From NCBI GenBank assembly GCA_973895155.1, contig OZ316899.1, positions 3,617,455 to 3,681,454 of the forward strand: 64,000 bases of DNA. The letters run 5' to 3'. Of this stretch, positions 2,846 through 37,780 are shown piece after piece. A program made the translations under genes and the position numbers. The notes beneath the pieces were generated by a model. It searched no databases and was not told the DNA's origin. It saw only the letters and a list, made by a program, of their open reading frames with translations. Origin of the DNA: Marsupella aquatica (Eukaryota > Plantae > Marchantiophyta). The stretch's first letter is position 1; each line of letters opens with the position of its first letter.

Positions 2846-2847
2846 GG

Positions 2848-5511
2848 TCAGAGAATGAGTCAGAGTCAACAAGTTTAGAAGGTGGAGTTGAACCAACCAA
2901 CGATGATGTTGAGAGTAGGATGGAAATCTCCAGAATTTCAGGTAGGTTCTCCATGAGAGTTGTGAACAAAATTCAGACACTTTGTCCTTCTCTCCTTTCT
3001 ACGCGAGAGTAGTGTAGAGCCTTTCCAGTATTTTGGGTTAACTTTGAGTTGTTTGGTCTTTCCTCCCAGGAGTATGAAACACTTGCAAAAGTTACGTTAA
3101 AGGTGAATAGCATCAGCGAGTACAATTGGATTTTGTTTGCTCCAAAGAAGCTCTACTCTTTATGGAGGGAGGTTTGCAATACTTGGCTCAAGGGTAATCT
3201 TTTGGATTCAACCGGACAAATGATAGGAAAATCGAAAGAAGCAAAATAGTTGACAGGGACAACATTCCGGGTTTTTGAGGGTGCCGTAGAATCCGACATC
3301 TTGGAAATCCTCCACAAAGTGAATTTGGGGGAGGTGCTTTTGATGAAAAAGAAACATGCTCTGATTGATCTTCCCGCCATGTCAGAATTGACAAGAAAAG
3401 CAAAGTATATTGACAAACTTAAGGGGGCAATACTTCGATTCTATCGGGAGAAGTACGAAGGGGTTTTCTTGCAAGGATCAACTTGGGGTGATGTAGTTCA
3501 GCAATATAATTTCACTGATGAGGAATTGGATCGTTGTTGTGCAATGGTGGACATTGGATATTTCAAGAGCCTTGTGAAGGTGTCATTAAAAGCAGAGATG
3601 TCGGAGCCACTGAAAAATAGGTTGAGAAATATTCACCAAAAGAGGTTTGGCGGCCATCTCCGCGCAAGGATGGATCCTTACCGAGTTTTCTATACTGGAA
3701 ATTTGCTCGCGTCTGCTGATCCTCCTTTGATTCGGCTAGCTGCAAGGAGTCAATATTGGCATCTCTAGCGATTGTTGATTTGACCCATACTGGAAAACCG
3801 GTTTGGACGCAGTCCGAAATCTTGAACTTCTTGAAGATCGTCGTGAATATCCCAACAAATGATCTGGTAACAGTTGTTTTTTTTGTTCGTCCTGGTATTA
3901 TTCTTGCAAGAATAATTGAAGTTGTTCGAGATCTCCCAAAGAACTCTAATGCGCACCTTGAATATGGTTTGTTCATGAGGAGTTCTTTGGTTAATGCTCC
4001 TTTGCAACACATGAGAGGCAATGCGGACATGGTTCTTTTCCTTGGCGTCTCCCAAGATCGGGTTCTTGATTGGGAAAAGCATTTCAAGGATTTTACCGGT
4101 CACTTTGTGTTGGAGGAGTCCGACCTCGAGGAGACAATCAAGCCAAGTCGATAGGATTATTCCGATATTTCGAAGGAAGATATGTAGGAGAAAAAAGGGA
4201 CACATTGATCTCACGACTTGAAGGCCTTGTTCCTTTCAAGTTGACGACTGGACGGCCATTCATAGTGAATATTAAGCCCAGTCGCATCCTACAGAGTTTT
4301 ATTCATGCATTTTCTTCAAGGGAGGAAATTATCCTGGATTTTTTCACAGGAGGGCAGGTACTGAAGAATGCATTGATGCTTGAGCGGGGTATAGCAACGG
4401 AGACAAGAAACAGGTAAACAAGAATTTTTTTTCCTGTTTTTAATATGCTGTTACCAGGAAAAAATCACTGTTACTAGGAAAAATGACAATTTAAAAATGT
4501 CTCCTAAAACATGTTATTTCCAACAAAAATTAACAATGCAACATTTTTGGCTAGCTTTGGGCGCTACTATTAGCAGCACCGGGCGCTAGCAAAAAAAACT
4601 GGTCGACCGAAAAAAAAATTATTTCAAAAAAAATTCAAAAAAAATTTCCACCCATTTTCTTGTAACCAGTTTTTTTTCCTGTTACCAATTTCTGTTATTA
4701 AATCCTGTTTCCTATTTGCTGTCTTTTGTAAACACCTCCTTGAGCGTGAGTGTTTTTCATTCTGCTATGACCATGAGGATGTCTCTGACCTCACGGCTTA
4801 TGCAAAGAATCTTAAATTGTTAGTTCCGGTTGCACAGTTTGCCAAATCATTTTGGAAACCTCCTGGCCTTGAAGGGAGTTCAACTCAGAACTCCAATGCT
4901 AGTGGAGCAAAAGAGGGCCAGCATTATCAGATTGCCGATACAGTTTTACATTACGTCGGGGTGGAAGCGGAGGAAAAGTTTCTAAGTTCCATTGGGGAGA
5001 TGAGAATTGGTCCATCAGTCGTTCCAATTGCAAGTCGTGAAGGATTTCCTCTTCTTATGGCTGAAGGAGGGTATGGTTTGGCAGATAATTCTGAAAACTT
5101 ACAGACGAGCACGGGGTTGATTGCGTTCAACAAAACTCTGGAAGATGTTGTGGATGATGTCTCCCTACACACGTATCGTGTAGATCCTCAAAATTTGTTT
5201 GACCCTCCAGGGTTAGAGTGCAACAGAGGTGTTGAGCAATCTCTTCTAGATGATGCTTCAGTTCTTCCAAGTACCCAATTTTTGATGATTGTGAGGCAAA
5301 AACTACACTCGAGGATGTCAAGAAGGGGTTGGTGGATTGTGGACCCTTAAAAGAGATTGTTGTGGAGGAGGTTGGGATTGTGGAAAAATATCACACTCCG
5401 ATTGAATTTCAATGCAATGACAATGTTGACTCTCGTAGCGCTGAAGTAACAGGAGAGAATGATAACTCATTTTCTCTCACATCGAATCTTCCTGAGGTGT
5501 CAGAGAGGTGA
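2848..5511 (+). pseudogene. Cassette 1: helical middle domain + beta-class N6A/N4C DNA methyltransferase-like domain + acidic linker (5' truncated by the Gypsy; stops, frameshifts and a MITE insertion)
   Basis: Frames 3049/3250, 3756, 4070 and 4817 join up. The C-terminus reads KPSRILQSFIHAFSSREEIILDFFTGGQVLKNALMLER|ECFSFC, matching the beta-class pattern KPxxLxxxlIxxxSxxGDxVLDPFxGSGTTxxAAxxLGRxFIGxE. Removing the 352-bp MITE plus one 8-bp TSD (360 nt) restores the frame into ORF 4817-5350. Confidence 0.65.
4387..4738. mobile_element. MITE-like non-autonomous element, copy 1 (8-bp TSD, hAT-like by TSD length)
   Basis: Flanked by the perfect direct repeat CTTGAGCG (4379-4386 and 4739-4746). 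A near-identical copy is at 19107-19432. The terminal inverted repeats are imperfect (AGACA...GAAACAGG / CCTGTTTC...TGTCT). Confidence 0.85.
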
Positions 5512-5619
5512 GTTGATCGTGCGGAGGCAACCAATGAGGCAAGTGCCAATTTCCTCTCTCTTGTCTCAAGTCATAAAGTTCTAAACATAAACAAATGTCC
5601 TCTCCCGTCTCCGGATCTA

Positions 5620-6339
5620 ATGGATAACAAAACGAGGATTGACAATTGCCTTAGTGATCTGTTGGATCAGGATGTGGTTCTAGTCAGGACTAATGGGTGC
5701 CTAATAACTCGTGGACAGATGAGGTGCCTGAGTCCTAGAAATTGGATAAGTTCTGATATTCTAAATGCCTACTTAAGTCTCATAGTGGAGAGGAATGAAC
5801 ATTCCGACAGGGAGCTTCTGAAATACCATGTGTTTGACACTTGGTTCTATACTGCATTGACGTCGAATGGCTACTCTTACCGATCCGTGGAGGCTTGGAC
5901 TTCACAACTGAAATATTTCTTAATTGATTGTCATCGAATATTCGTCCCCATTCACGAAGGTGGCGATCATTGGGCGTTAGTTGTGATTGACATGGAACAC
6001 AAGTATTTAGAATATCTCGATTCTCTGCATAACAATAGGCCAGAGGTTCTTGAAAACTTAGCCAGATATGTCGAGGATGAAATTCAAAGCAGAAGTCACA
6101 AGCAAGTCTTAGCTACTCTATGACCAAAACATAGTCCCAAGGACATCCCAAGACAAACTGATTACTATAATTGTGGTGTGTTCGTTATGAAGTTTGTGAA
6201 CTACCGTAGTTTGGACCTTCCTTTTGATTTCACAGGAGAGGACATAGATTTGGAGAGGAGAGAAATCGTTTTAAGTCTATTCAGGAATAGATTGAGCTTT
6301 CCTCCGCAATACAGTGATTTCTGCACGAGACGCATGTAG
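5620..6339 (+). pseudogene. Ulp1/SENP-type SUMO protease (peptidase C48) domain with one in-frame TGA at 6121-6123
   Basis: Reads WISSDILNAYL, FDTWFY, PIHEGGDHWALVVID...YLDSL, then after the stop PRQTDYYNCGVFVMKF. His, Asp, Gln and Cys catalytic positions are all present. The frame continues to TAG at 6339. Confidence 0.9.
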
Positions 6340-6450
6340 AGGGTGACAGACGGGTTATTTGATTTCAAGGACTGACTTGACTTCAAATGGTCTTTGGTCA
6401 AGACTGTTCCAATGAATAACCATTTGGATTTGATATTTTTATGTTTGCAG

Positions 6451-7508
6451 AGTTTGTTCCCAAACTCCACTCAGAGATCAAGCAAAAGCTCTTGATTTTT
6501 GACCTTAATAAGGTTTGTTTCAATTCCGTAAAGAGTAAAAGCTCCGGACCATTTTGGAGGCTCACATCTGTGAGGGGCGTTCACTGGGGAAGACGGGGCG
6601 GGAACACATTTATGTATGTGGAGCGTCCAGGACTTCACAAATTTTTACAAGTGATTTTCAGGTATTACGATGTCGCGATTTGGACTTGCGCGGGAAGGCC
6701 GAGAACAAATGAAATGATGGATCTTGTTTTCAATGATGCTGAATGAAAGCAATTCAAGTTTGTATTCACCCAAGAAGAAACGTTTGACACTGGCTTTTTG
6801 AGGTTAGATATTACGGATGGGAAGGCAAACATACTTCTCAAGGAAATCCAAACTGTTTGGGATCGTTTTGGCAATAGATATGGTCCGACAAATACTGTTC
6901 TCATCGATGACTCTCCTCTAAAGTGTTTTGCGAATCCAAATGTTAACACGTTGTTTCCAGTTCCATTTGTTCACAACATGGGAGGCGACACTTTTCTGAT
7001 GGAGATATTGCTTCCACTTCTTCAAAGAATGCACAATGCTTTTGATGTAAGACACTTTCTGAATGTTAACTACCCAAAATGGTCCGCCTACAATAAGGGT
7101 GAAGCCCAAAGGAGGCATGGTGATATCTTTGCAGGACTCACTCAAGCCTGGGGGCACCGCGTTGCTGGCATCGTCGATAATTTCACTATCCTTGATCACA
7201 CGGCAGACGAGATTTCCTGGGAAGTGAAGCATACCGTGCAAAGTTTGCCACCGGTGCAGGATATGAGTGACCGTGACATCAATTCAATTGCTAAAGGTCT
7301 ACTTGGAGATGGTTATTCTGGCCCATATTTGCAAAATAAGTGGCAATTTGTTTGGGAAGTCCTAAAAACTAGGGACCTTACTTCTAAGTTTAAAAACTTG
7401 TATCCTAAAGACGCTTGCAACCGAGATAGAAAGGTTGATAAGTCAGGAAGTAGACTTACTTGCTCAAATATGTTTTGTAGCAACACACATTCAATGATCG
7501 TTATTTAA
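6451..7508 (+). pseudogene. FCP1/NIF-like HAD phosphatase domain, copy 1, with C-terminal Cys/His motif; one in-frame TGA at 6744-6746
   Basis: Reads KQKLLIFDLNKV, ERPGLHKFL...YDVAIWT and NTVLIDDSPLKCFANP, the NIF/FCP1 motifs. ORFs 6441 and 6798 are one gene. A phase-1 acceptor TTTGCAG ends at 6450. Confidence 0.85.
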
Positions 7509-7698
7509 AAATTTGGAGACTTGTAACATTGAGGGGAGGCCTATTACAAGTAAACAATTGTTATGGACTTCTGTATGGTTCCTGTTAGTGGGTGACAATG
7601 ACAATGTGACATTACTCATGTGACTATTCTCCACCAAATTTGTACGCCAAAAATGTATTTTACATGGATTTGGAAATTTCAACTGGTGTTTAGGAAAC

Positions 7699-8988
7699 TT
7701 GAAAGAGTGTTCTAGAAATTCCAGTTCCAAGTTTTGGAAACTTCATTTAAGGTTGTTGGATAATGTATTTATTGAATTTGGAAATTTTACCAAGCCACTT
7801 TGGAAAAAAGAATTTCCAGACTTAGTGAAATTACTGATGTCGGAGGAGCCTGGTGTTTTAATTGATAAGGATGTTGCATTTGCTCCCAAGTTTGATTTAG
7901 TCAAAGCAAAGCAGTGGATAGAATCTTTGTCCAAGGCGAGAAAGCTTCCAGCGGTGAATACAAACCCTGTGCCCGAGCAAGCGCCAGAGAAAGCTCCAGA
8001 ACCTACAACAGAGACCGCGGGAACTACAGCAGCAACCTCTCAAAGAGCAGTGGGAAAACAAAAACAAAGCCAAAGGAAACCTCCGGTTGAGAAGAAACTT
8101 CCAGTTGAGAAGCCGGTTGAGAAGCCGAGTACAAGAAGCCAAGTTGAGAAGCCAGTTGAGAAGCCAGTTGAGAAGCCAAGTATGAGAAGCCGAGTTGAGA
8201 AGCCAGTTGAGAAGAAACTTCCGGTTGAGAAGCCAAGTGCAAGTGAAAAGAGACCAAGACAGAAGAAGAAACAGAAAATTGACAGTGCCATCATGGATGA
8301 CACTACAGAAAACCTGACAATGCATTCACAAGATGTGGATGAGCAATTGGACGCTCCTGAGGAGAAGAAGGTCTTAGAAGGTAATGAGGTACTACAACAA
8401 ATGGAGCAATATTATATGTTTGGGATCAATTCGATATTTTCTATTCCCGTAGAGAGTATTTTCCCTGCGTTGGCAAGACTCTGTTACAGAATGTTGAATG
8501 CAGACCATGTAAAGGAGGTGGCCAATTCCATGATAAGAAATCTGGGGCATGAACCACACATAGCAGACTTGATTCCTTACACTGCAAAACATAGAAACCT
8601 AATGCAGTATGACAACATGGAATCAGATAGGAGGGACTTTGTAGCAACCGTGAAAAAGGGCGAGGTTCAATTCCTTGCCATTAGCGGTCAACATTCGGCC
8701 AGAGCAACCAGATGGATTCAAGAATGCGCAAACAAGGATGCCAAGCTAACAACATTGGTGAAAAAGCTGGAATTTTGAAAGTCAAGAATATTATCTCCTC
8801 GAACACCATCGTCAATATTAGTTGAGCATTCAATGCGATCTAATGCTATCAATAGCACGATGGTGTTTCAGTCCTGCTTCAAAGATACAGTCGTTCATGC
8901 CAGGCGACAATTTGTGGAATGTGGAAGACCTAGCCGGCCAAAACATGGGGACAACAAAACAAACGCTCAAGACAATCAAAAGTTTCAA
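7699..8988 (+). pseudogene. Cassette 2, 5' part: N-terminal region, VEKP repeats and ParB/sulfiredoxin-like N-terminal domain; TGA at 8776-8778
   Basis: Reads FSIPVESIFPALARLCYRMLNADHVKEVANSMIRN...QFLAISGQHSARA, resembling ParB-N (ipi..I.p...R.......eLa.SI...G...P....iidG.rR..A). The frame continues past the stop (KSRILSPRTPSSILVEHSMRSNAIN...) to a candidate phase-0 donor at 8989. Confidence 0.6.
8083..8235 (+). repeat. Coding minisatellite, 12-bp core GTTGAGAAGCC(A/G) encoding VEKP repeats
   Basis: Visible tandem copies; the protein reads PPVEKKLPVEKPVEKPSTRSQVEKPVEKPVEKP... Confidence 0.85.
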
Positions 8989-9039
8989 GTACGAAGTGTT
9001 ACTGCTTGATGGGTACAATACCGTAGTTTCTCCATATGT

Positions 9040-9430
9040 GGTTACAATTGAGATGGTAGTCTTTGACCACAAAGCTTCAAGTTTGGTTTGGATTGAGATG
9101 GTCCGAGTCCAAATGGATACATGCACATTCAGTAGAATATTTCCACTGATATCATCTAGTTTTGTGTTGGACTGGGATGGTCCCAGTCCAAATGGATTCA
9201 TGCACATTCAATAGACTATTTCCAATGATATTGTCTAGTTTTGTGTTGGACTAGGATGGTCCCAGTCCAAATGGATTCATGCACATTCAATAGAATATTT
9301 TTCCACTGATACTGTCTAGTTTTGTTTTGGACTAGGATGGTCCCAGTCCAAACTAAATCATGCACATTCAATAGAATATTTCCACTGATATTGTCTAGTT
9401 CTGTGTTGGACTGGGATGATCTCAGTCCGC
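9040..9430. repeat. Tandem array of ~79-bp units, each containing an 11-bp-stem palindrome
   Basis: Units start TGCACATTCA at 9122, 9201, 9280 and 9361, with a degenerate unit before 9122. The first unit has the perfect hairpin TTGGACTGGGA-TGG-TCCCAGTCCAA at 9167-9191. Confidence 0.9.
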
Positions 9431-9492
9431 ACCTGAGTGCATTCAAACAATTGAGTTATGGAGAACTAACAGACTTTCCTTTGCAATTGTAG

Positions 9493-11802
9493 GATTGGTT
9501 GGCTCTTGCAAGAATGACCATGGGAAGGAAAGATTGTCAAAATGTTTACTGGTTACTGTTTGCGGACAATGCTCTTTTTGATTTATGGAGTTTGGTATGC
9601 CAGTCGTGGTTGGATGGGAAACTTCCCGATGGAGTTGGGGTAGAAGGAAATGAGAAGTCTGAAAAAGCAATTATTGTTGCCATGTTTTGATGGTGAGTTG
9701 ATCTCACAACGAGACATCACAAGAATACTGACGCGGGTGAAGTTAGGAAAGGTATTGCTAAAGAAAGATGCCTCTAATAAATCAGACATGCCATCTATAG
9801 AGGAGTTGGCAAAAGATGTGAAGATCGTGCAGAAACTGAAGTCCCTTATTGAAGACTACTATTGCACCAAGGATGCGGTGAATTTCCCGACAAATACTAA
9901 TTGGGGGAAAGTAGTTGAGGTTCTTCCTACGCTAGCAATTGATTCAGAGTTCAGCAGGTGTTGAAGAGCCGCTGGCAAGGTCTATCTTGCCAACCTTTTA
10001 AAGCCAAATCATACACGGGAGAGCGCAATCTTGCCGACGACATTGGTATTCCGCCTAGATGATATATACTACCAGAAATTTGGCGGAGGATCACGTTCTC
10101 GGACCCTACCATGGGTTACATTTTTTAGCAACAATCTCATGAAGACCATTGATCCAAAGTCATTGCAAGAAGCTCCTCCGACCTGCCCTCTTGCCAGTGT
10201 TGATTTTAGCCGGCTTCTGCAAAAATAGTGGACTGAAGAAGAGATTCTTGTTCTCTTTGAATACATTGTGGAGCTTCCACAAAATCCCACGATTGTTGTG
10301 ACGATAACAATTCATCCTGGACAACTTGCACTGAATGTCCATGGTGCCCTTTGTAAATTGGGACAAGAGAAAGCTTTGACCATTCACATTGAGTATGGGA
10401 GTTATTCCCGAGATGATCAACCGCACCCTCATGACTCATGTTGGGGTGGGGGGATTGAAGAAGTTATCTTTGCGGGGATTTCTTGAGATGAAGACGTCAA
10501 TTGGAATGAAGTTTTCAAGCCCAACTATCCAAAGCCAAAATTCTTGTATACTTCAAAGGATGTTGATTACAAAGTATGCAAGATTGACAAGGGAAAGGGG
10601 AAGGCTAAGGAATCAGATGAGGGGACACAAAACGATGACCTAAAAGTGGTTTTGGACCCGGAAGAGACCATCAAGATTATGAATATGGCCCCTCGATTTG
10701 AGACAATTGGCAGTCGCGGAGGGTGGGTTAATCCTCATGCCAAACCCACGCGGATGATCCAAAGGATTATTGAATCCTTGTCAGAACCGGGAGATTTGGT
10801 TCTAGATTTTTTTTCCGGTGGCCAAGTCATGAAGACATCTTTTTTTTGCGATAGGGAATGCTTTGTTTATTGTGACTCTCAGTCTGAGAGGCATTTTGTG
10901 GAAGCTTTTTCTTCCTACCTTTGCGAGAGAGTTCCCTCACTTAAAGCCCATTGTGAATCACTTGCTGAAAATTCTTGACAATGGGCTACCACTGTTGCGG
11001 CTTTAGCTGTCGCTGTTGAATCCGACGGTTATGAGTTTGAAGATGTTGCTGACAAAGTGGCTGAAGGCGTAGAGGCATCAGACGAGGCATATGTCAAGAA
11101 TTTGGATGACCGTGTTGGTCAAGGTGAGCCTTACGATGTAGATGATGATATTGGACTTGCACCAAACCGTTCATCTAGTTTAGATGACATCCCTCCAGGG
11201 CCCAATGAAGTTCAAGTTGATGATAACTTGGACAAGGATGATCCCAATCCAACAACGTCGGGAGGACAGATAGAGCAAATGGAAGGAGCAAGGGTTGATA
11301 TGTTTGATCATCTTTCTTCAACCAATGTGATCAATGAAGGCGCAACGAGGCTTGGAGATTCAAATGAAGCTGAAACTCAAGAATTGACTTTGGGGGAGAT
11401 TGGCGGATTGCCTGACATTCCCATCAATCCAGGAGAAATGCATCAACGGCTGTTGACAACCAGGCAGGTGCTTCAACTTGTCCTAACACACTCTTTTCAG
11501 CTTCTGATGACAAATTGGTGTTCGTTCGTTCACACACGGGGAGTCCTGTTGTCCTTCCGCTCTCAAAAAAGAAAGGGAATAGAGTTGGATCAATTGGATG
11601 GAGGTCATTGGAACGCGACTCACGATGTTACGTGTGGAAAAGTGGGCCAAATAGAGGCCAAGAAATATCATTGGATGTTGCTCCTTCAATTCTCAATAAG
11701 GAGGAGTATAAGAGGGCAAAATTGGGGTTGTTAACTCCTGTTTGGACTTCACCTTATTGGGTAGAACAAAGTACTTCAGATATCAATTTTGAAATCCAAT
11801 AG
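9493..11802 (+). pseudogene. Cassette 2, 3' part: helical middle domain + beta-class N6A/N4C DNA methyltransferase-like domain + acidic linker
   Basis: After one frameshift near 9680, a single frame runs 9650-11734 with four in-frame stops (9964, 10228, 10486, 10978). It reads NPHAKPTRMIQRIIESLSEPGDLVLDFFSGGQVMKTSFFCDRECFVYC. It is collinear with cassette 1, e.g. YWLLFADNALFDLWSLVCQSWLDG vs NWILFAPKKLYSLWREVCNTWLKG. Confidence 0.7.
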
Positions 11803-12943
11803 GAGCTTGGTGCTGACATGATTATTGATGAATATGGATCTCTTATTTCAGAATGAAATTCAGCTTTTGACTTTCTATTTATTCATACCAATCTAAAATA
11901 CTTCTCGGTCTCACAGAATGTGCTCACCAATTAAAGTCTCCATATCCGTCTACACATTGTGAGGCTTCTAAAAATGGTATGTAGGTTAATTTTCTTTTTT
12001 GTCAGCCATTGTCTTGTATTTTTGGACTGAGACAATCCTAATCCAAAGTTCACTTTGGTCTTTTCTCTGAGAATGGTGTTTGGTGCACTTGCAGAATCAA
12101 GACCTGGTCCCGTCAACACTACTACACTATCGGCCCCTTTTGCGAACCCATACACATCACAATCAACAAAGGCCCGATAAACAGAATTCCGGCACTTGCG
12201 AACTAACACGCATCGCTACACCATCCCAAATTGCGAAGTTAAAACCTTCGCACGCGGACCATCGCAACGCCATCGCAACACCATGGCAACTTCCCAACCG
12301 AATTCCCTCGCAACTTGCCGAACACTTGCGAGTTCAAAATTGTTGCAGACGCTTTGCATTATGCCGCACGGTCCTTTGTTACCGACGTTGATTTTTGTGA
12401 AGCTGGAAGGTTCGCTACATGTTTGTGATGGGAATGCGTTCGGTATTTGCGATGTCATGGTGTTGGCAACTAGCAAGCCTTATAAGATCACTCTTATGCA
12501 AAATAAATTTGATGGGGACTTTTGAAACAAATTGGATCGGAACTTGTGATATAGTTTAGGCCAGAAGTTGTGAAGCGTTTGCATTCGCAACTTGTGATGT
12601 TACTTGGTTCTATAATAGCGATCCGAGTCATTTCAGTCTTTCCTAGTTATCCAAGTTCGCAATGGGTTTGCACTTTCATGGGAACATGACTTTCAATCAA
12701 TGTTTTGCGAGGGATTTCTCTTGGCAGTGGACCCAATGTGGAAGGCAAATGTTTTTTATAAGATGGCAAGTATATAGGTGGATATACCAAAATGTTAGGG
12801 CTTGAAGGAACCCAATACACAAGAGGGGTGGCATATCTGATGCCAAGTCACCCTACTCAACATATGCTATCCTAGCTAAGCTCCAGCACGGCTAGTCAGT
12901 GACATATATCTCATGAGCCCGGTCATGAGATTCTACAAGCTAA

Positions 12944-15002
12944 CTAAAATGGACTCTTCCGACCCCGCTTTGTCGGCTTCTTTGCCGGCTTCTTGCCCTT
13001 ATCCTTCCGTGGATGTACAGCCTGGTGCTGACGGGTGTGCGGTGCCTTTCAGCACTGCTGCTCCTACTGCTCCTCCTGCTCCTCCTGCTCCTGCCCATCC
13101 TCCTCCTCATCACCTCCCTCCTGCTCCCCCTCATCATCAACCTGTCTCGATGATGCACGACTACTACCACTACCGCGATGGGATGAACCTACCTCCCAGC
13201 TACTGCCCCCCTCCCTAGAACCACTGGTAAGAGGAGTAGCCCCCTCATCCTCATCATCACTACTACTTGCGTCAGCACCCGACCCCTCAGGCTCATCCAA
13301 ATCATGCATCCGTACACTTAATCAGTTTCTACAAATTAAAAAGGGTCATCCACAATGTTGGCATCACAATTAATTAAACCTTGAACACCTAGATACTTAC
13401 AGTAGCCAACTCGGCATCCACCATCTGAAAGAGGTACTTTCTCCCATGCTCCATCCCTATCTCAATATGTTTCTTGGATATCTTCCTCTTATATTTCCGG
13501 TACTACCATCCACCATAAAACCAAAAATTAAACCCATAGGCTAAACCAAAATTCACAATGCGAGAGGCCTTAGGCCTACAAAAGTTAAACTACTTTGAAA
13601 ACAACTCAAATTCACATTTGCAAAGCTGATGCGTTCACAAAATGCAAAGCCCTAATTTTTGCAAAGGCATTGCGATGGCTTTTGCGATGCAAGTACCTTC
13701 GCAACAGCATCAGAAAATCCAAAAAGAAAAAAGTGCATAATAGATTTTGCGAGGCTCTTGCAAACGGATACGCATTGCAATGGGATCGCAAACTATGATC
13801 CCAAGAGGTTTTTAAAAATGCACAAATTTCCAAGTGTCAATCGTGACCTAAAACAGTGCACAAGCAAGCACATGAGAGCATGGACATTCATGACATTCTG
13901 TTCACTTGCATTACCTCAACTGAGAAAGTAAGGAGGAAAGAGCTTAGGGAGGAGAGGAGACACTCACAAAGTGGGCCTTGAGACCGCGGAGCCCGCCTTG
14001 ACCCAGCTTGTGGACTGGATTGGGGGTGGCTTTCACTCGCTTGGCTGCATCCATGAAATGTTTGGGTGGTCTTCCTTCTTCGTCGACCACCTTTTGCACA
14101 TCAGCTACCTTCTGCTTGAGTCCCTTCAGGTCATGGTCAAGGGGGAGCTTCCCGGTCTCCTTTGCTTTCAGGGATCGAGCTAGTGTATCCTTCCACTGTT
14201 CCAACTCGTGAGTTGCTTTGATTTGCACCTCAATCTTGTAAAATGCATTCCAGATGTCCTCAGTGAATTGGAGGGGCCTGCGCAAACTCCTGTACAATCT
14301 CAAGTCTCTCAGGTGGGCTCTAATCTTCATCCTATCATGGTATCTCATTTGAGACATGGAATTAGAAATCTTGTCTGCCAGCCATTGCTCATCTATGTCA
14401 GCTCCATTACGAAATGCATCCTTGATCTGATTCATCACTCTCTTTCCCTCTGCCTTCTCAACCTTTCCCCATTGCATGCCTTGTGAGAAATTGCTTGTGA
14501 TGATCTGTTTGATGGTGCTCTTAGCCCCTGCATAGGCTAGCTCAGTTGGAGTCCCAGTTGTCTCCAAGGCAATGAATGGAAGATTTTTCCTTGCATCCTC
14601 TTTCTGACGTTGCTCATCTCATTGTTTTCGAATTGCATCCCTCTCCTCTCTTCTCTTCTGTTTTTCTATGGCTTGAGGAGAGGCAACTCCCGACTTAGCC
14701 CTCTCCTCCCTCTTCCTTCTTTTCTCTCTAGCCTTCTCCTCAGCTGCGACCCTCTCTTCCTCGTCTCTAGTAGCTTGCCCTGCCACAATTCCTGTTTGTA
14801 AAACCTGGCCTAAAATGGCACTCAAGGAGGCAAGCCTTGCTGGAGTATTCAAATTTACTTCACCCAACTGTGCAGCACTGAGATGTTGGGCTACTAAGTC
14901 GCTCCATGCATTCTGTTGCTTCTCCTGATTTGCCCCATTGCCACTACCACCAGCACCATGTCCTCCACTCCCACCGTGCTCTCCACTCCCACCGGTAGCC
15001 AT
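12944..15002 (-). pseudogene. TnpA-like (Ptta/En/Spm-type) accessory gene of the nested CACTA, spliced, with stops
   Basis: ORFs 14619-15002 and 13944-14567 are one frame across a TGA. It reads ...RRPLQFTEDIWNAF...PVHKLGQGGLRGLKAHF, followed by a GTGAGT donor. Later small exons end in an acidic/basic tail with TAG at 12944. It shares the H-x-G-x-G-G motif with the outer TnpA (KEHFGRGG). Confidence 0.65.
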
Positions 15003-15354
15003 AGCTCAATCCCTCTCAGGTCTCTCTCGATATTCTCCCCGCGGCCCCTTCTCCTCTCGCTCTCCCGATCAAACAAGGAATGAGCTCGACCCGAGCTCCT
15101 GCCGACACATACGTATTTAAAAAAAAGCTCCTTGCGATCACATTCGCATCACAAACTGCCACCCTATTACCTTCGCAAACTGTCTCGCAACTTGCGATAC
15201 TTTTGTGAAGAACATACCCTCGCTAATCCATCGCAACCCGCAGAAACGCCCAAACATTGCTCTCGGCCTCTGTATTTGCAAAGATGTTGCGAACCCGGGA
15301 GGTTCGCAAAATGTATCTCTAATTTGTGAAGCAATTTGCAAGGCAGGTGATCTC

Positions 15355-16125
15355 GGTTTAGGGTGGGAAACTATCCCAGGTGTTTAAACGGCTCTACAAG
15401 GGTATAACCTAAACCCTTTTAACTCAACATGGATTTGTGAATGGCCAATTACTTTGAAGAAGAGGATTTTAGGTTGTAGTTGGGCTTTGTGTTTTTGTTT
15501 TTGAATCTTAATTGGGTTCTAATTTAACAAAGGGTTTGAGTTTTAATTTGGGGTTTGGATTTAGAAAGGGTTTAGTTTAGGGAGGGTTGTGTTTCAATTG
15601 AAGGGGTTAATTTGGGTTTAGGTTTTAATGTAAGGGTTGGGTTTGACTTTTCACTGATTTCATATTTTTTGCTCTATACATATTTCAGTTTAGGGACATG
15701 GTTTTAATAGAGGGCTTTAGGTTAGGGTCTAAGGTAGGGGTTTGGGTAAGGTTGTAATTGAGAAGTTTGGGTTAGGGTTTAGGGTAGGGGCTTGATTTTG
15801 GTTTAAGTTTAGGGGTTTGGGTTAGGTTTTAGCTGAGGGGTTTGGGTTAGGTATTGAATATAGGGGATCGATGGGTTCAATTATAATTCAGGGTTGTGTT
15901 TAATTTTTAATTTAGATATTTGGGTTAGGATTTAGGGTAAAGGCTTCATAGGTAATGAGGGAGTTTGGGTTATGGTTTCAGATGGGGTTAGAGTTAGGTT
16001 TTAGCTGAGGGATTTGGGTTAGGGTTTGAATGTAGCAGTTGGGTTTTTAGCGTAGGGGTTTTGGCTAGGGTTTAGGGTTTAGGGTTTGGGTAAGGGTTTT
16101 ATATGTTCATGTTTAGGGTAGGTTT
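15355..16125 (+). repeat. Degenerate telomere-like (TTTAGGG/TTAGGG-like) G-rich tract
   Basis: Dense GGGTTT/TTAGGG variants, with a perfect run TAGGGTTTAGGGTTTAGGGTTT near 16066-16087. Confidence 0.8.
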
Positions 16126-16563
16126 TTTTTTCTAATTGAGGTTATGCTTTCTTTATTTCATTAACATGAAGGGGTGGAACACTCTAGGAGTTGCAGGGCA
16201 CTTCCCCATTGTTTTGAAAGTTTTGGGTAATGCATATGCATTGCGAGAGCTCGGGCATCTGAAAGGTAAAGCTTGTTTTCCTGGCATTTTGTATTTTTAC
16301 TGTAACTTGAGGGTCTATCACCCCTTTCTATAGTTTACCATAAGTCATTGCTTAATTCATTGTATATTTGCAGATTTTTCCCTCCTACTTCCAGATTGGG
16401 TTCATCAAGTTTGGACCAAAAGACCTATAGGCATTGTTGAGCCCGGGTCTCATAAAGGTATTTTTTCCTTTCATTTTAGTTTAATATGTCTACGTAGGGA
16501 TTACAAATGATCGTTTTAGCTATTTTTTTACTAACTTGCTATTCCAAATCTTCCACTTGCCAG

Positions 16564-17715
16564 ATGTCTTCATCCTCTACAACTTCCACCACATCAGACT
16601 CCTCCTCTGATGAGGACATAGATCCTCCTCCTCAGCCTGAAACAGCCGCTCGTCGACCTAGTGGTCCACCACACCAACTTTGCAATTGTAAAAAATGTGT
16701 GGGGATGGTTGTCCAAAAGTCATATGTATGTGCAGACCATATTTCTTGATATGGACAACATCGAGGTCTTACACCCAGAGCCTCTTCATCCCATACGGTG
16801 AGTTGTAAACTTACTATGGTTTATTTTTTATTCAATAAATATTGCTAGCGTGATAAGTTGGGGAAGTTCACAATCACTTTGTTAGATTTGTTCCTATAGG
16901 TATCTAATAGGCCTACACCCACGGCACCAACACCCTATGTTCCTTCACAAGGAGTTCTAGATGCTATAGGCTTGGCCCTTTCACAAGCTTTTCGTTTAGT
17001 TGCAGCAGAGCGAAGTGGTGTTGGGACAGTTCAGGATGATGGTATTGTTACATGAGGGAAAAAATGGTCTAAAAGGCAACCTAGAGGGGAAGTTGATCAG
17101 TACACCTGTAGGGTTGATGGTAGGTGGGGACCTTGTACATTCACAAGGAAATGTGTTCCTATCATAAAGGATTGGAATCCTGATTGCCTTGGTTTTCCAT
17201 GTGATATAACCTATGGTGAGGAAATAGAGGTTTGGGGAAGACATTGGATTGTCAAAAGTTCTACACTAGGGGCGAGACATGGGTATGGAATTTTTTCTTG
17301 CCAGGACATCATTGTGGATGATATGGGTGGAAAAGGGCGCTCTCAAGATGGACCAACGTTGTTCCCATATGGTGGACCCATTTACAAGCGGAGACATTGG
17401 AACATGCTCCTTGTACAACACCTTGAGTGGAAGACTTGTGCATTGGACATGGATACTTTTGATGGTTGCACTAGGAAGTATAGTGAACAACGTATAATTG
17501 ATGGTGATCCCATCCATAGTGGAAATATAGCCGGTTTCCTTAACAGTACTGTGGGGACCCGGCCTAAGCGTAGGAAAAACTGTGAATGGGTTTTTGTTGA
17601 TGGTCCCCCTCCAACACCATATGGGCAGAGATATCATCATGGCCATTGTCTAGTTGTAGCTACTAGGACCATCAAGGCCGGAGAGGAGTTGTTTACACAT
17701 TATGAGTGGGATTAG
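16564..17715 (+). pseudogene. Transposase-associated Zn-binding exon (16564-16797) spliced to a SET-domain exon (16900-17715); two TGA stops
   Basis: Exon 1 reads CNCKKC...CADHIS*YG (transposase-associated C/H motif). Exon 2 reads VKSSTLGARHGYGIFSCQDI...GNIAGFLNS...NCEW...VVATRTIKAGEELFTHY, i.e. SET motifs GxG, (R)FxNH-like and GEELxxxY. GTGAGT donor at 16798; TAG acceptor ends at 16899; phase 0 and in frame. Confidence 0.8.
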
Positions 17716-17911
17716 GCTTATTTTAGGGATATGTATTATTTATATGTTCCTTCATGCTTTGTGAACATATATTTTGTAAGTTAGGGTTTACACCCTAAAC
17801 CTATGATGTTCTTTCACATTGTATGTTAATAACATGTGTCGATATTGTTTTTGTTTTATGAGGGATTTAATTTGGAGTTTGATTGTGAATGCTTTATTGT
17901 ATTGTCCATAG

Positions 17912-20900
17912 AATGTGCGACCTAGTCAAGATATGTTGCCAAGGAGGTTGAGAGCTACATATGAAGAAATGGGCATGCCACAAGACGGAGTCACATCATC
18001 AACAAATTCTTCATCCAATGACAGTGACAATGAGGGTTTGCATGAAGGGGCACCTAGGACAGATTTTGAGGTCATGTAGGACCAGGAGACAACCATGGAT
18101 GACTTCATGACAGATTGGTTTGGTGTGGATGTTGATGGTGAAGGACGTGGACCACCCAATGAAGGAGCTCCTCCACCAAATGCTGCACGTGACCCCCAAC
18201 CTCAACATACACCAGAAGGTCAATAACAATGGGAAGAAGCAGAGGCACATGCTAGAACACCTATTTATGGGGGTGCTCGTTTGAATAGACTCTCTGCCAT
18301 CTTGGCATTGATGAATCTTCAGGCAAAACACAAGGCAAGCAATGCCCTTCTATCGGATTTGTTTGCAATTTTCCATGACCTCATGTTACCCAGTGACAAT
18401 GTATCGCCAGGAACTTGGAAGGAGGCAAAGAGAGTTCTATCATTCATTAGTATGGAATATCATATCATTCATGCTTGTGTGAATGACTGCATCCTATATC
18501 ATGAGACCAATGCCAACATAACTAAGTGTCCAATTTGTCATGAGCCTCGATATGACAACAACATGTTGACGGAAAAGGTGCCCAGGAAAACTGTCCGTTG
18601 GTTTCCCATTATTCCTCGATTGTTGCATATGTATCGATGTTCTGACTTGGCAGAATTGATGGTATGGCATAAGACACATCGATCAGAGGCTGGTGTCATG
18701 CGGTTGCCAGTTGACTCCCCTGCTCATAAGCATGTGGAGGCACAATGGTCAGAGTTTGCACATGACCCTCGTCATGTGAGGTTGGGGTTGGCATCAGATG
18801 GGGTTAGCCCCCACTCCCTTGGTGGGAAAGGACGCCCAACATCAGTTTGGCCGGTGGTTGTTATGAATTACAATCTTCCACCATGGTTGTCCATGAAAAA
18901 GGGCTTCTTATTGTTATCATTGATTATCCCATGTCCATCTAAGGTAAAAAACATGGACACCTATTTGACACTATTGGTTGGGGAACTCCAAAAATTATGG
19001 GACGATGTGTGGGCCTATGATGCTCGGAAAACTACAAGGGGATTACCACGTGTCTTCAAATTGAAGGGAATTAATATGTGGACCATGCATGACTATCCTG
19101 GTAAGGGGATATAGCAACGTAGACAGGAAACAGGTAAACAAGAATTTTTTTTCCTGTTTTTAATATGTTGTTACCAGGAAAAAATCACTGTTACCAGGAA
19201 AAATGACAATTTAAAAATGTCTCATAAAACATGTTATTTCCAAAAAAAATTAACAATGCAACATTTTTGGCTAGCTTTGGGCGCTACTATTAGCAGCGCC
19301 GGGCGCTCGCAAAAAAACTGGTCGACCAAAAAAAATAAATTCAAAAAATAAATTCAAAAAAATTCCATTTTCCTGTTACCAGTTTCTGTTATTAAATCCT
19401 GTTTCTTGTTTGCTGTCTTTTGTAAACACCTCCAATAAGGGGTATGGATTGGTGTTTTTTTATGTATTAGAGAGTTTGTTTTAAAAGAAGTCCCTCATAT
19501 TTATGAATGTACATGAACTTTTTAAATCCTTTGACTCTAATTGAGAAAGTTGTTTTGGTTTGGCTTTGTTGCAGGGTTTGGATTTGTTTCAGGGTTACAA
19601 ACTCAAGGGTATAAGGCATGCTCCACTTGTGGTCCAAGCCTTGAAGATATGGCCAAGTACTCAAGATGGCTTCGCAAGATAATCTACCTTGGGCATACCA
19701 AGTTTCTTCCACTTGGACATGAGATGAGGTCTGACCCCCTTCTATTTTAAGACTTTGACATGATCAATGGTGATGAGCGTGACATACCTAAGCGTACATC
19801 CTTTGCACATTGGAAATCCATAGTTGATAGGGTGGCAGACCCTAACGACCCCATGACATTTGATGGAAGTGGGTTGACGAGGTGGAGTATACTAGCCACA
19901 TTGCCGTATTGGCCAGAGTTGAAGATTCATCATTTGTTAGACCCCATGCATATAGAGGGAAACGTTGGGAAGGCTTTGATCAAGCATTTTTATGGAGAAA
20001 AGGACCATAATTTTAGGGAGGCATGCCAGGATCTAGAACGACATCCAGATGTATGCATAACAATTGATGCATCAACAGGGATGGAACACCGTCCTTCAGC
20101 TCCTTGGGTTTTGAGTGTTGGTGAAAGAAGAGAGTTTCGACAACGCATAGGTCAGATGCGGTTTCCTACAGGCTATGGTGCCAATCTCCGGAAAGCTTTT
20201 GGGATGGAGGACAGTCATAAGTGGCCAATGTATCTAAAGACACATGACTATCACCGTTTACTACAACATATACTTCCTGTGGCAATCATAGGCTTGGGCA
20301 GTGAAGAAGTGCAAGACGCCCTATGGTCATTGGAAATATATGAAGAAGAGATCCCACGGATGGAGTATTGGCAGCAGAGGTAGTGTGCAAGTTAGAGAAG
20401 GCCCTCTCTCCTTCCTTCTTTGATTGTCAAGTGCATTTACTTATTCATCTTGTGAGGGAGGTTGCCATTGCTGGTCCAGTGCATTGTCGTTGGATGTATT
20501 GGTTGGAAAGGTATATGGCTGTGTTAAAGGCTTATGTACGGAATCGTGCACGAGTGGAGGGGAGCATGGCAATAGGATACTTGGCAGCTGAGAGTATGTT
20601 CTATTGCAGCAACATCTTAGCTACCATTGATCCTAGTTGTCCACGCAGTTGGATGGAAGAGAAAGAAATGGAGGAGGATCGTTTAACAGGAGCCAAAAAA
20701 ACACGCTTATTCGAGTACTGACCGGAGTGGAGTTGACACAGATGACTACTTTCATGTTGAGTAATAGTACTGTGATGGAAGAATGGAGAGAGTTTTATGA
20801 GGATGCAAAGAGGGAGAGTCATCGCCCAAGGATTTTTCCAAAGTTCCTTGAGTATATGAGGGAGAAAGTACTTTAGTTGGATGCTATGGTGGCCCAAGGT

Positions 20901-21500
20901 GAGAGTGTATCACATTTTCCAGATATGACTCTTGAGGTTCAAACAATTGTTCATGGCCCTTTGAGACTTGTTCAGACCAGAACAACAATGTGGACACAAG
21001 GGAGACATTTCAGGATTTCTGACCTTGATGAGAAGAGGGGTAGAACTTTGACTGTGGAGTTCAAGGGCAGTTCATGCAGGATTCACAAAGTAGCCGCCAT
21101 GACACCAATGTCATCCAAGATGTGGTGCCTCACTATGGGAAGATAGAGGAGATCTTGATTGTATCCTATGATGTGGATACAAAATTTGAAGAGTATGTCT
21201 TCAAGTGTAAGTGGTTCAAAATTCACTTGGTTGGTGAGAATCGCACGGTACTTCTTGATGATTGTGGGTTTACTCGACTGAAGACATCAGCAACTAGCTT
21301 TCAACCATCTCATTGGCAAACATCTAAACCGTTTATATTCCCAAGTCACCTTGAGTAGTGTTTCTATATTCCGTACCCACCAGACCCAGAGGAGTGGTCG
21401 GTTGTTATATCGTATGTGCCACAATCTCATTCCATTATCTGAGAAAAACCTGAAGTTATTATTGTGTCAAACGGAGGAGAGGATGAGGACCAAGTTTGAT
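17912..21500 (+). pseudogene. TnpD-like CACTA transposase (Transposase_21, DUF4218, DUF4216 regions), disrupted
   Basis: Reads IHACVNDCILY...CPICHEPRY, RWFPIIPRL, PRHVRLGLASDG, WPVVVMNYNLPPW, MHDYPG|FGFVSGLQTQGYKACSTC (intron 19101-19574), LDPMHIEGNV, LKTHDYH, FFDCQVHLLIHL, RWMYWLER and YGKIEEI...FKCKWF. Confidence 0.95.
19107..19432. mobile_element. MITE-like element, copy 2, in the transposase intron
   Basis: Near-identical to 4387-4738. The flanks TGGTAAGG and CAATAAGG form a decayed 8-bp TSD with 5 of 8 bases matching. Confidence 0.85.
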
Positions 21501-22253
21501 GCATCACTAGTAGTAAAACTTGTTGTGAGCGTATAATTGTGATTATATTAACTATCATGGTTTTATTTATATTTACCTATTTATTTTCTTCTTTTGTCTT
21601 ACAAACACTTGGACTTTGAAATTTCATTTTACTGCTATATAAGCAACCCTAGCCACTAGAAAAGTTATCCTCATGCATGCCACCTTTTTGAAATCCCTAG
21701 CTTATAACCTAAACACATGCATTCTCCATCTTCTAAAGTATTATCTCAAAAATTTCCATTCTGAAAACTTTGCAAACAACTCTCTTTGCGAAACATTTTT
21801 TGAACCAGTCGGGAATGAATTTATGAACCTCTTGTGAATCCAATTCCATTGGTACTTGTGATACAAATACGTTCTCAAACTTGTGACCAAATTGGCTTTG
21901 GTACTTTGCAACCCAACGTTTTTCACAACACTTTCCAAACATAATAGGTTCACCAACCACTTGTGATCGTATTAGTATCGCTAAATTATGAACCAAAATG
22001 TATCTGAATACGGTCGCGATGGTTGCGGACTCACAAAATCGTTACGAGACAACTAGTATCTAAATGTGTTGCGAAGTCAATAACATCAAAAATTAATTGC
22101 GATGTATGTAGCTTTGCAACGTGAATTTGCGACGATAAGAGCATGGGATATTGTGATGCCTGTTGCATCACAAAATATCTGAAGGTTCTAACATCGCAAG
22201 GCCTTCCCGATGTCAAAAAACACCTTCGCAAAAGGGGCCGATCTGTAGTAGTG

Positions 22254-23270
22254 CAAGCGGAAGTTGCTGATTTTGGACCTTAATAAAATACTTTGGGATT
22301 TTGTTGAATTCCAAAGCAAGGGCACATCCAAGGATATTGTCACCTCAAGTGGAGTGCATTGGGATAGAAAAATGGTATTAGTCGCATGTATACAAAATGA
22401 CCAGGGCTCCATGAGTTTCTTAAGTTGGTTTTTGACAGATTTGACGTTGCAATTTGGACATGTGCTGGGATACCGCAAACAATGAAAATGTTGAACATGA
22501 TGTTCATTGATGAGGAGAGGTCAAAACTCCAGTTCGTATTCACACAGGTGGAAGCTTTTGACACAGGCATTCAAAGGGGTGACATTACAAACGGAAAGGC
22601 AAATGTGCTACTGAAGGATTTTTGGGTGGTATGGAATGCATTTGGAAATCTATATGATGAAACCAACACCCTCCTTGTGGATGACTCCCCCCTTAAGGCC
22701 TTTGCCAACCCAGACATGACCGGATTATTTCCAGTGCCCTACACGCATGCCAATCGTGGAGATAATTTTCTTCTAGCAATTCTTTGGCCATGTCTTGAGA
22801 AACTTTCACATGCAAGTGATATTCGATGTTATCTTCTTCTGAACTCTCCAAAGTGGTCTCTTTTGCACATGAAGAGAGACAAGGCAAAAAATGAGATTAC
22901 TTATGATCAACTTAGCAAGAAATTTGCAGCAAAAATTTGGAAGTCACACTTTACGCATAGTGTGTTGGACCTCAACAACAATGAGATCCCTTGGAATGTA
23001 AAGCACCGTATATGTAGTTTACGTCCTGAGGAGGAACTTGACAATGCACTTGTGAACTCACTTGCTAAATCATTTTTAGGAAATGACTATTCAGGTCCAT
23101 ATAGAGAAAATCCCAGACACTTTTTGCGGGAGATTATAGCCATTAGAAACAACACCACCAAATTTCAACTCCCTGAAAATAAAGGGCATTGCAACCGTGA
23201 CAATAGGGTAGATAGGAAAGGAGACAGGGGCACATGCTCAAATACACATTGTACAAAGCACTTGGTTTAG
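22254..23270 (+). pseudogene. FCP1/NIF-like HAD phosphatase domain, copy 2 (exon begins at 12095, split by the nested CACTA), with C-terminal Cys/His motif
   Basis: Reads KLLILDLNKIL, (R)PGLHEFL...FDVAIWTCAG, NTLLVDDSPLKAFANP, CNRDNRVDRKGDRGTCSNTHCTKH. It is collinear with copy 1 and has a frameshift near 22395. Confidence 0.85.
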
Positions 23271-23489
23271 ATATTTCATTGACTCGTGTTAAGCCCCTTG
23301 GATAGTACTAGAAATGTGTTCGTATTCATTGTAGATTTGCAGATAATTGTATAAAAATATTTTATAATCTATTTGGAATGATGTTATTTTGTTCACACAA
23401 TATCAATGGTCCTTAAATGGGGATGTAATATTTTTATAAGTTACATTTTTATATGTATTATTTATTAATATAATACTAATGTGATTTGG

Positions 23490-23622
23490 CCTATAAAGTG
23501 TACATTTAGAGACACAAAAGTGTACATTTGGGTGTCTTGAAGTGTACATTTGGGGCCATGAAATTGTACATTTCAAGACTCATTTGTGAACAAAAGAAAA
23601 TACATCTTTAATGAATAGATTG
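23490..23622. repeat. Fragment related to the 34001-34338 MITE (AAGTGTACATTT tandem motif)
   Basis: Four AAGTGTACATTT-like copies plus AAAATACATCTTTAATGAATAG, matching the right arm of the MITE at 34250-34332. Confidence 0.6.
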
Positions 23623-23647
23623 ATCAATAGAAAGATATACAAAGACC

Positions 23648-24875: not shown

Positions 24876-25105
24876 ATTGTTTGAAGATACTGTATAGTTC
24901 GGTTTCATTTAGTTGGGAGTGGGATCATACTAACATGGCATGCCATGGTCTAGCAGTGAATGCAGCGAATACCTCCATATCTCTTTCAATATGTCACCAA
25001 ATCCGGATCTGTAAAGAGCATTGGAAAGATCTGGTCAAGGCAAGTAAAATTAATATAAAACACTTGGGAAACGGAGGTGTATTAAGGAAGATACAGCCTG
25101 ATTAG

Positions 25106-30007: not shown

Positions 30008-30297
30008 ACATTTTCTTTGATCATGTAGAACAAACAATTTTTGAATGTTTTGGTTACCATTGTTTCACTCATGCGAGTGGAAAATGAGTACTTTCTATCA
30101 TTTCATCATAAAGACTTATGTTTTTTCAATTGTTCTATATTAGAGCTTGTGAATGGTGGAGTGTGAATTTCCAAATACAATGATGAATGATGGATAAAGT
30201 GATGTTTTTGTTTACCGTTTTAAGTGGATTCATTGTATGTGATTTTGAATATAACTATGAGCACCTCTTAGATACATCCCAAATGACATTACTTAAA

Positions 30298-37778: not shown

Positions 37779-37780
37779 AG

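Follow-up and report, generated by a model that had tools for sequence, protein, structure and literature searches.

The 64,000-nt stretch of the liverwort Marsupella aquatica genome analyzed here (contig OZ316899.1, positions 3,617,455 to 3,681,454; the window) is a pile of nested transposons, a dense transposon graveyard in which two diverged gene cassettes stand side by side. Both cassettes encode a methyltransferase (MTase)-like fold and a phosphatase-like NIF domain, separated by a Ulp1-type SUMO protease in cassette 1 and by a different domain, the C-domain, in cassette 2. We consider it probable that each cassette is the decayed 3' gene of its own transposon copy, that the two helper-gene copies are nested, and that the gene product, when intact, would have served its element in self-recognition. 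A first-pass annotation of this DNA had proposed that a single CACTA transposon kept both paralogous sets under element-level selection. Its observation was confirmed and its interpretation partly supported; the single-CACTA component finds no support in the breaks, termini and transposase boundary described below, nor in the dead state of both copies.

The evidence for nesting comes from the right ends of the cassettes and from contigs of four public runs (two organism labels, library type unknown). Contigs of all four runs stop at 7838, others begin at 7839-7843, and depth jumps 5-10 fold at this point; other contigs carry ..GGATTGTTATCGTTGGA ahead of 7839, in frame with cassette 2. A branch at 7838/7839 with an alternative, in-frame upstream sequence indicates that cassette 2 is interrupted in its first exon. 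The reverse-complemented ends at 7838 and 23624 (ATCAGTAATTTCACTAAGTCTGG.. and ATCAATCTATTCATTAAAGATGT.., respectively) have 14/23 and 26/40 letters in common, and a subterminal repeat array of its own precedes each of them. Beyond cassette 2 on the right, homology to a CACTA transposase begins abruptly at about 23625, in the middle of DUF4218. The contig breaks, the homologous termini and the mid-domain start of the transposase together argue for nested, independent transposon copies rather than cargo of a single element. In each copy the accessory gene occupies the 3' end of its element, which terminates 330-354 nt past the NIF stop codon. The relevant boundaries are:

7509-7838, plus strand: 3' subterminal region and right end of the cassette-1 transposon, with TGGAAAYTT repeats and the terminus ..TTAGTGAAATTACTGAT
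23271-23624, plus strand: 3' subterminal region and right end of the cassette-2 transposon, with 22-bp AAAGTGTACATTTGGGG.. repeats at 23495-23573 and the terminus ..AATGAATAGATTGAT
23625-30918, plus strand: 3' part of an older CACTA of a different family, with a transposase fragment from mid-DUF4218 and downstream open reading frames (ORFs)

The older CACTA has 12/60-bp subterminal repeats at 30298-30574, and its right terminal inverted repeat (TIR), CACTAGTGAAAAATAGTG (reverse complement), ends at 30918. The cassette-2 element would have entered the transposase gene of this CACTA, the cassette-1 element would then have entered exon A of cassette 2, and a Gypsy retrotransposon, a miniature inverted-repeat transposable element (MITE) and a second CACTA would subsequently have entered the cassettes. 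Such an order predicts that the 5' part of cassette 2, ending ..GGATTGTTATCGTTGGA(GTCGGAGGA), lies to the left of the window, followed by the left terminus of the cassette-1 element, ATCAGTAATTTCAC... Further to the left, the terminus ATCAATCTATTCAT.. would be expected after the 5' half of the transposase gene of the CACTA (Transposase_21 through mid-DUF4218).

Gene structure, relatives and decay of the cassettes

The two cassettes are co-oriented and have an identical domain order. When the window was compared with itself by tblastn, 3013-4414 of cassette 1 aligned with 9475-10855 of cassette 2 at 27-42% amino acid identity, and the NIF regions (6420-7505 and 22255-23255) aligned at 44-50%. 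Two homologous but strongly diverged cassettes were thus correctly recognized in the first-pass annotation (27-50% identity overall), and the domains that it listed are real. It had missed an upstream ParB-like exon in each cassette and a 60-nt micro-exon, and 4379-4738, within cassette 1, is a MITE and does not belong to the linker. Ulp1 is indeed confined to cassette 1, and the "unrecognised segment" in its place in cassette 2 is the conserved C-domain at 11416-11850. The order along the protein is a Lys/Pro-rich N-terminus, the ParB-like domain, a helical region, the MTase-like fold, an acidic disordered linker, Ulp1 or the C-domain, the NIF/HAD domain and a Cys-rich tail. The predicted exons are listed below; exon B of cassette 1 was placed by tblastn to the homologous proteins P0005 and P0017.

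2848-2941, plus strand: cassette 1 exon A, final 94 nt (tail after the ParB-like domain), ending ..PEFQ|GTAGGT; cut by the Gypsy element at 2847
3070-6336, plus strand: exon B of cassette 1, which encodes a helical region, an MTase-like fold with VDLTH as motif IV and DFFTGG as motif I, a linker, and a SENP-type Ulp1 (5620-6336)
6451-7508, plus strand: cassette 1 NIF-like exon; DLNKV, AIWT, LIDDSP, Cys-rich tail, Pfam NIF
7839-8988, plus strand: exon A of cassette 2, encoding an N-terminal part rich in Lys and Pro and the ParB-like domain (..ISGQHSARA..); its 5' portion is cut off by the cassette-1 element
9493-11850, plus strand: exon B of cassette 2, which encodes a helical region, an MTase-like fold with VDFSR as motif IV (near 10190-10210) and DFFSGG as motif I (near 10800), then the acidic linker (10979-11415) and the C-domain (11416-11850)
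11917-11976, plus strand: cassette 2 putative micro-exon of 60 nt, with phase-1 boundaries on either side, situated between the exon of the C-domain and that of NIF
12095-12116, plus strand: cassette 2 NIF exon, first 22 nt, after the TTGCAG acceptor
22257-23270, plus strand: cassette 2 NIF exon, remainder; KRKLLILDLNK.., Cys-rich tail

Intron positions are shared across the family. The exon-A donor is in phase 0, ..(K/E)FQ|GT, at the same position in cassette 1, cassette 2 (KFQ|GTAAGA) and the Calypogeia fissa locus L006 (KFQ|GTACTC), and the acceptor of the exon that follows the ParB exon directly precedes DW/EY, at an intron position common to the family. A micro-exon flanked by AG|..|GTA, with the same phases as in cassette 2, is present in the related loci L003, L005 and L006. 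The phase-1 TTGCAG acceptors that the first-pass annotation had noted at 6450 and 12094 were confirmed, and (T)TGCAG-type acceptors precede the NIF exon in the same phase in L001, L003, L005 and L006. These shared positions and phases argue for each cassette being one spliced giant gene, the joining of its exons being predicted. The conserved ..DEYGSF tail was considered as a hidden splice donor and rejected, GT being missing there in cassette 2 and others. A proposal that 4386-4672 is a piece of transposase intron that truncates the cassette-1 methylase was likewise discarded, as the runs revealed a cleanly delimited insertion of 360 bp that had duplicated 8 bp.

Searching 1.84 billion representative proteins with the motif-I piece of cassette 2 returned only 37 relatives, including proteins of Calypogeia fissa and Riccia sorocarpa. 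Exon A of cassette 2 is 59.6% identical to positions 170-607 of L006 and 35% identical to L005; exon B is 45% identical to P0005 over 424 aa and 39% identical across the C-domain; and the cassette-1 NIF exon is 58.7% identical to P0001 over 329 aa. The order ParB-like, MTase-like, C-domain, NIF was found in L005, in L006 and in the Riccia sorocarpa locus L007, which has a ..DEHGSF tail ahead of NIF. L003 encodes the MTase-like fold and the C-domain in a single open frame of 914 aa with NIF next, and L001 has NIF behind an intact SENP-like Ulp1. Versions with Ulp1 and versions with the C-domain are therefore both present outside this genome. A tree of NIF exons, built to split Ulp1-type from C-domain-type lineages, resolved only the pairing of cassette 1 with P0001 (support 90/93). 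The intact ORFs and shared intron positions in distant liverworts support an apparently ancient family and uphold the first-pass view that the genes are old and transposon-associated. In L006 a minus-strand long interspersed nuclear element (LINE; 2173-7387, with a DUF4283 ORF1, endonuclease and RVT_1) lies between the ParB-like and MTase-like exons.

At this locus, both cassettes are pseudogenes. Cassette 1 has in-frame stops at 3247 (TAG), 5509, 6121 and 6744 (all TGA), 1-nt deletions near 3725 and at 5273 and a frameshift near 4088-4268, in addition to the Gypsy and MITE insertions. The TGA at 6121, in Ulp1, corresponds to a Trp codon in L001. Cassette 2 is interrupted by in-frame stops at 8776 (TGA), 9962, 10226, 10484, 10976 and 11800, by two frameshifts (near 9650-9687 and near 22375-22400), and by the insertion of a CACTA. 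Sister copies in the public runs, 95-99% alike, have CAG at 3247, CGA at 5509, an additional T at 3725 and an additional G at 5273, and have neither MITE nor Gypsy. The window has A/T where the sister copies have G/C at 80 sites, vs 37 sites the other way, an excess that fits decay by deamination. Element-level selection, for which the first-pass annotation had named dN/dS as a check, is not borne out by the 37 classifiable differences from the sister copies (24 non-synonymous, 13 synonymous), which are near neutral, few in number and mostly decay of the window copy; between the cassettes themselves (27-50% identity) synonymous sites are saturated. A conserved Arg codon, CGA in the Calypogeia locus L006, is TGA both at 8776 of the window and at 1266 of L005, an unrelated contig. 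This looks like parallel CpG deamination, with programmed read-through as the alternative.

Domain state and proposed helper function

The MTase-like fold is Rossmann-like. In the AlphaFold model of the intact homolog P0005, core residues 200-480 have predicted local distance difference test (pLDDT) values of 70-90, and Foldseek matched the model to CcrM, MboIIA, RsrI, PvuII and M1.HpyAVI (E 2e-8 to 4e-6, probability 1.00, target template modeling [TM] score 0.41-0.71). The motif order is permuted, with motif IV N-terminal to motif I, as is characteristic of beta-class N6A/N4C MTases. The Pfam N6_N4_Mtase match is confined to motif I, the S-adenosylmethionine (AdoMet) site, with E values of 3e-7 for cassette 2 and 0.017 for cassette 1. 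Motif I (FxGxG after an HP.QKP helix) is present: NPHAKP..VLDFFSGG of cassette 2 aligns with RsrI 223-256. The catalytic motif IV, (D/N/S)-P-P-(Y/F/W), is replaced in all homologs by a loop of the type D(F/L)x(R/H): DFSR in cassette 2, P0005 and P0017, DLTH in cassette 1, and DFAR, DFTR, DLLR or DLVR in other homologs. In P0005 the strand LAILD (227-231) occupies the beta-4 position and is followed by FSR where PPY is expected. Relative to the beta-class enzymes CcrM, RsrI, MboIIA and PvuII (PF01555), the liverwort family thus shares the fold, the permuted order and the helix and loop NP..KP....(V/I)LDFF.GG, but has (V/L)DFxR or VDLTH at motif IV and a large helical N-terminal addition, and its MTase-like domain lies within a eukaryotic, spliced multidomain protein.

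NIF domains were detected by Pfam in cassette 1 (6441-7508; 2.6e-8 and 1.2e-5), cassette 2 (22425-23270; 2.7e-6), L005 (1.7e-19) and L003 (2.3e-15). The HAD core, the nucleophile Asp, AIWT (motif II Thr), the motif III Lys and LIDDSP (motif IV DD) are retained, as in FCP1/SCP/UBLCP1 phosphatases (PF03031). Unlike in these enzymes, DxDx(T/V) with both Asp residues was not present: the second Asp, the general acid/base, is Asn (DLNKV in cassette 1, DLNKI in cassette 2 and P0001, DLNG and DCNG in homologs) or, in one homolog, Glu (DLEK), and the Riccia NIF sequence is without motif I altogether (alignment A3). The first-pass label "FCP1-like" is correct at the level of the NIF/HAD core, but the nearest solved structure is UBLCP1 (2.6e-8), not FCP1; no BRCT or other Pfam match was found in the family-specific C-terminal extension of ~130 aa, which has a C..TC.N..C tail. 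Because canonical motifs are replaced in both folds, the methylase fold has probably lost canonical chemistry and reads or binds DNA rather than modifying it, and the NIF domain probably binds rather than dephosphorylates.

Among the enzyme domains, catalytic residues are preserved only in Ulp1. The Peptidase_C48 match at 5620-6123 of cassette 1 (7e-20) retains the catalytic His, Asp and Cys and the oxyanion Gln (GGDHWALVV, EYLDSL, RQTDYYNCGVF), and L001 matches SENP2 at 2.3e-31, placing the protease in the SENP1/2 type. On these residues, Ulp1 was apparently active when intact. The first-pass proposal of enzymes acting on DNA marks, SUMO and phospho-proteins is doubtful as regards DNA marks and phospho-proteins, given that the whole family has other residues at MTase motif IV and at the second Asp of DxDxT. 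The ParB-like assignment derives from weak language-model matches to ParB_N, DUF6551 and DUF3723 clusters (0.88-0.93) and from the motif SGQHS(A), which resembles DGQHR. The C-domain (11416-11850; ~100 aa) is conserved and beta-rich, and was also found in P0005, P0017, P0014, L005, L006 and L007; KOW- and Tudor-like hints for it proved unusable.

Intron 1 of cassette 2 contains a tandem array:

9080-9428, no strand: 4.4 copies of a 79-bp unit (Tandem repeat finder), each containing the palindrome TTGGACTGGGA-N3-TCCCAGTCCAA

This palindrome has seven matches in the 64 kb, all within cassette 2, where 0.02 were expected. A module made of the ParB-like domain and the dead methylase would recognize the DNA of its own element, and in cassette 2 the N3-spaced palindromes of intron 1 would be the likely target. 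The module would recruit a SUMO protease, a pseudo-phosphatase that binds phospho-proteins, or both, to the element DNA or to the transposition complex, so that the helper's role when intact would be self-recognition or anti-silencing, not DNA methylation. That the helper counteracts silencing is plausible. We also envisage a more specific scenario, unlikely in its full form, in which a "polyvalent" liverwort helper of ~1,500 aa reads its own palindromes and tethers an active SUMO protease and a substrate-trapping pseudo-phosphatase, thereby stripping SUMO-dependent silencing or stalling or recruiting RNA polymerase II; it would be VANC-like with other parts, and would exist in an Ulp1-type and a C-domain-type version, both ancient. 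Should the intact protein target the palindromes of its element, transposon self-recognition linked to SUMO or phospho-signaling would become open to testing. The present locus offers a graveyard copy only, and the argument that two sets were kept by one CACTA should not be used.

Accessory proteins with ParB-like and N6A/N4C-methylase domains have been described in algal Sola1, Plavaka and Mutator elements (PMC12477816; 10.1101/2025.02.11.637652), for example the 1104-aa accessory protein of Ectocarpus Sola1-1_Ec32 (PMC12477816) and the accessory genes PAG2 and PAG3 of Bostrychia/Chondrus Plavaka elements (10.1101/2025.02.11.637652). Inverted-repeat arrays adjoin the algal genes, and their authors propose binding or marking of the own element (PMC12477816; 10.1101/2025.02.11.637652). 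The likeness to the liverwort family extends to a gene on a large cut-and-paste transposon beside a transposase, to adjoining inverted-repeat arrays, and to the order of ParB-like and amino-MTase domains, the last by published description and with the liverwort ParB-like identity tentative. The liverwort family differs in its land plant host, in the family-wide replacement of the DPPY loop, and in its additional domains, a NIF-like domain together with either a SENP-type Ulp1 or a novel C-domain. ParB-plus-methylase accessory genes were therefore already known, from algal transposons and only recently; the Ulp1/NIF extension is new. The family's reach now includes land plants, in a lineage that replaced the catalytic motifs of methylase and phosphatase and in which some members joined the helper to an apparently active SUMO protease.

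Anti-silencing, non-transposase proteins are also encoded by Kaonashi/KI-MULE elements and, as VANC, by VANDAL elements of Arabidopsis; some are fused to captured Ulp1 (C48), and VANC recognizes short motifs of its own element family and counteracts methylation (PMC13317346). Element-encoded non-transposase proteins, some with a Ulp1 (C48) fusion, are common to these systems and the liverwort family; the partner domains and host lineage differ. The first-pass comparison with VANC remains a reasonable functional guess, but no VANC/DUF1985 similarity was found in the cassette ORFs, for which Pfam gives C48, NIF and N6_N4_Mtase only. A looser analogy may be drawn with the polyvalent proteins of phages and conjugative elements (PMC5512222), which likewise string ParB, methylase, peptidase and other conflict domains in one mobile-element polypeptide; those proteins come from prokaryotes, enter together with the DNA and as a rule retain their catalytic residues.

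Alternative explanations for the neighboring cassettes

Nesting of separate transposon copies has to be weighed against three other explanations. The two cassettes could be internal cargo of one large CACTA, with its right end at 30918 and its left end beyond the Gypsy element, kept by element-level selection as a counter-silencing toolkit. Both lie to the left of a CACTA right terminus in the orientation of its transposase fragment, CACTAs of this genome do carry extra genes, such as the SET ORF of the inner element described below, and plant DNA transposons have been documented to capture Ulp1 (PMC13317346). A single CACTA should have a left terminus TTC-CACTAGTGAAAAA enclosing both cassettes, without inner termini; of the two termini and target-site duplication (TSD) that would enclose such cargo, only the right terminus at 30918 is inside the window. 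We judge this explanation improbable, as 7838/7839 is a branch point in four runs, with most cassette-2-type copies differing upstream, in frame; as homologous termini occur at 7838 and 23624; as the transposase is cut mid-domain precisely at the end of the cassette-2 unit; and as both cassettes are pseudogenes. Enclosure by CACTA termini in other copies, as the first-pass annotation would have it, was not seen either: no CACTA transposase or termini were found within 5-20 kb of the homologous gene sets in L005, L006 and L007. Slightly less improbable, yet still quite unlikely, is that separate copies became neighbors through unequal recombination, deletion or local rearrangement, leaving 7838 and 23624 as scars. 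The setting of a dense transposon graveyard, the 5' truncation of both cassette 2 and the CACTA transposase, and the lack of visible left ends or TSDs would suit such an origin. Two independent breakpoints, however, have 26/40 terminal letters in common, are equally far from the NIF stop and are each preceded by their own subterminal repeat array, as expected of true element ends and not of random scars. Highly improbable, in our view, is an ordinary multicopy family of liverwort host genes pseudogenized here in transposon-rich DNA: the Riccia copy is annotated as a gene beside a UDP-glycosyltransferase gene and the introns with conserved phases are gene-like, but one genome contains many diverged copies of differing depths, copies are repeatedly decayed or interrupted (window, L005, L006), and terminal and subterminal repeats lie directly 3' of the gene.

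Several points weigh against nested helper-gene copies as well. The left ends of both cassette elements and of the outer CACTA fall beyond the window, so that their TSDs and left TIRs are not visible. The terminal pattern ATCA..TTCA.TAA was built from its own two matching ends, and only the 14/23 identity (P about 0.002) counts. No contig of the four runs, whose library type is unknown, skips any of the proposed introns. The ParB-like domain had no match in Pfam (E up to 5), NCBIfam (E up to 1) or a PDB profile search; the stand-alone model of the C-domain is poor (mean pLDDT 58), and Foldseek against PDB and AlphaFold clusters returned nothing below E 0.4. Palindrome binding and an effect on silencing are pure inference.

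Other elements of the window

Three insertions disrupt the cassettes:

1-2847, no strand: 3' end (long terminal repeat, LTR) of an LTR retrotransposon of the Gypsy type that landed in exon A of cassette 1; its last letters, up to 2847, are ..TGTGACA
4379-4738, no strand: MITE-like insertion of 360 bp with an 8-bp target duplication, interrupting the cassette-1 methylase fold
12117-22253, plus strand: nested inner CACTA of 10,137 bp, with TIRs, a 3-bp TSD CAA, an ORF with a SET domain, and, at 18227-21355, Transposase_21 plus sequence homologous to DUF4218

At the Gypsy edge, contigs of the runs have a different sequence (..TTCAGAATCGGGCGG) ahead of 2847, and depth up to 2847 is 50-100x greater. 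The joint without the MITE (4378 to 4739, with 8 letters in common) was seen in all four runs, and depth over the insert is 10-50x greater. A second MITE-like copy, 92% identical, lies at 19105-19385, just past the Transposase_21 exon of the inner CACTA; the lengths range from ~290 to 360 bp, and the depth of this repeat in the public runs is very high.

The inner CACTA, which is apparently coding-complete, has the inverted CACTA termini, 3-bp TSD and Transposase_21 of CACTA (En/Spm) elements. Its first letters are CACTACTACACTATCGGCCCCTTTTGCGAA, and a nearly identical sequence, reverse-complemented, closes it; its termini are CACTACTACA..ATCGGCCCCTTTTGCGAA on both ends, flanked by CAA at 12114-12116 and 22254-22256. 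Excision of the element with one CAA restores the frame ..SRPGPVKRKLLILDLNK.. over the junction in the cassette-2 NIF exon, which confirms the first-pass finding that 12117-22253 splits the phosphatase exon. The SET-domain ORF (16500-17912; Pfam 1e-6) is upstream of the transposase, and 15400-16080, upstream of the SET ORF, contains tracts of TTTAGGG/CCCTAAA repeats of the plant telomere type in both orientations.

To the right of the older CACTA, an element of ~3.2 kb (31915-35157) has terminal inverted repeats of ~280 bp with 79% identity. Internally (34018-34337) it holds the AAAGTGTACATTT repeat motif that is also found in the 3' end of the cassette-2 element; following up the resemblance of the GTGTACATTT repeat region to 34018-34337 yielded nothing further. 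A young LTR retrotransposon at 37484-43790 has 296-bp LTRs that are 99.7% identical and long ORFs at 39415-42885, and an ATG-initiated ORF of 678 codons lies on the plus strand at 57728-59764.

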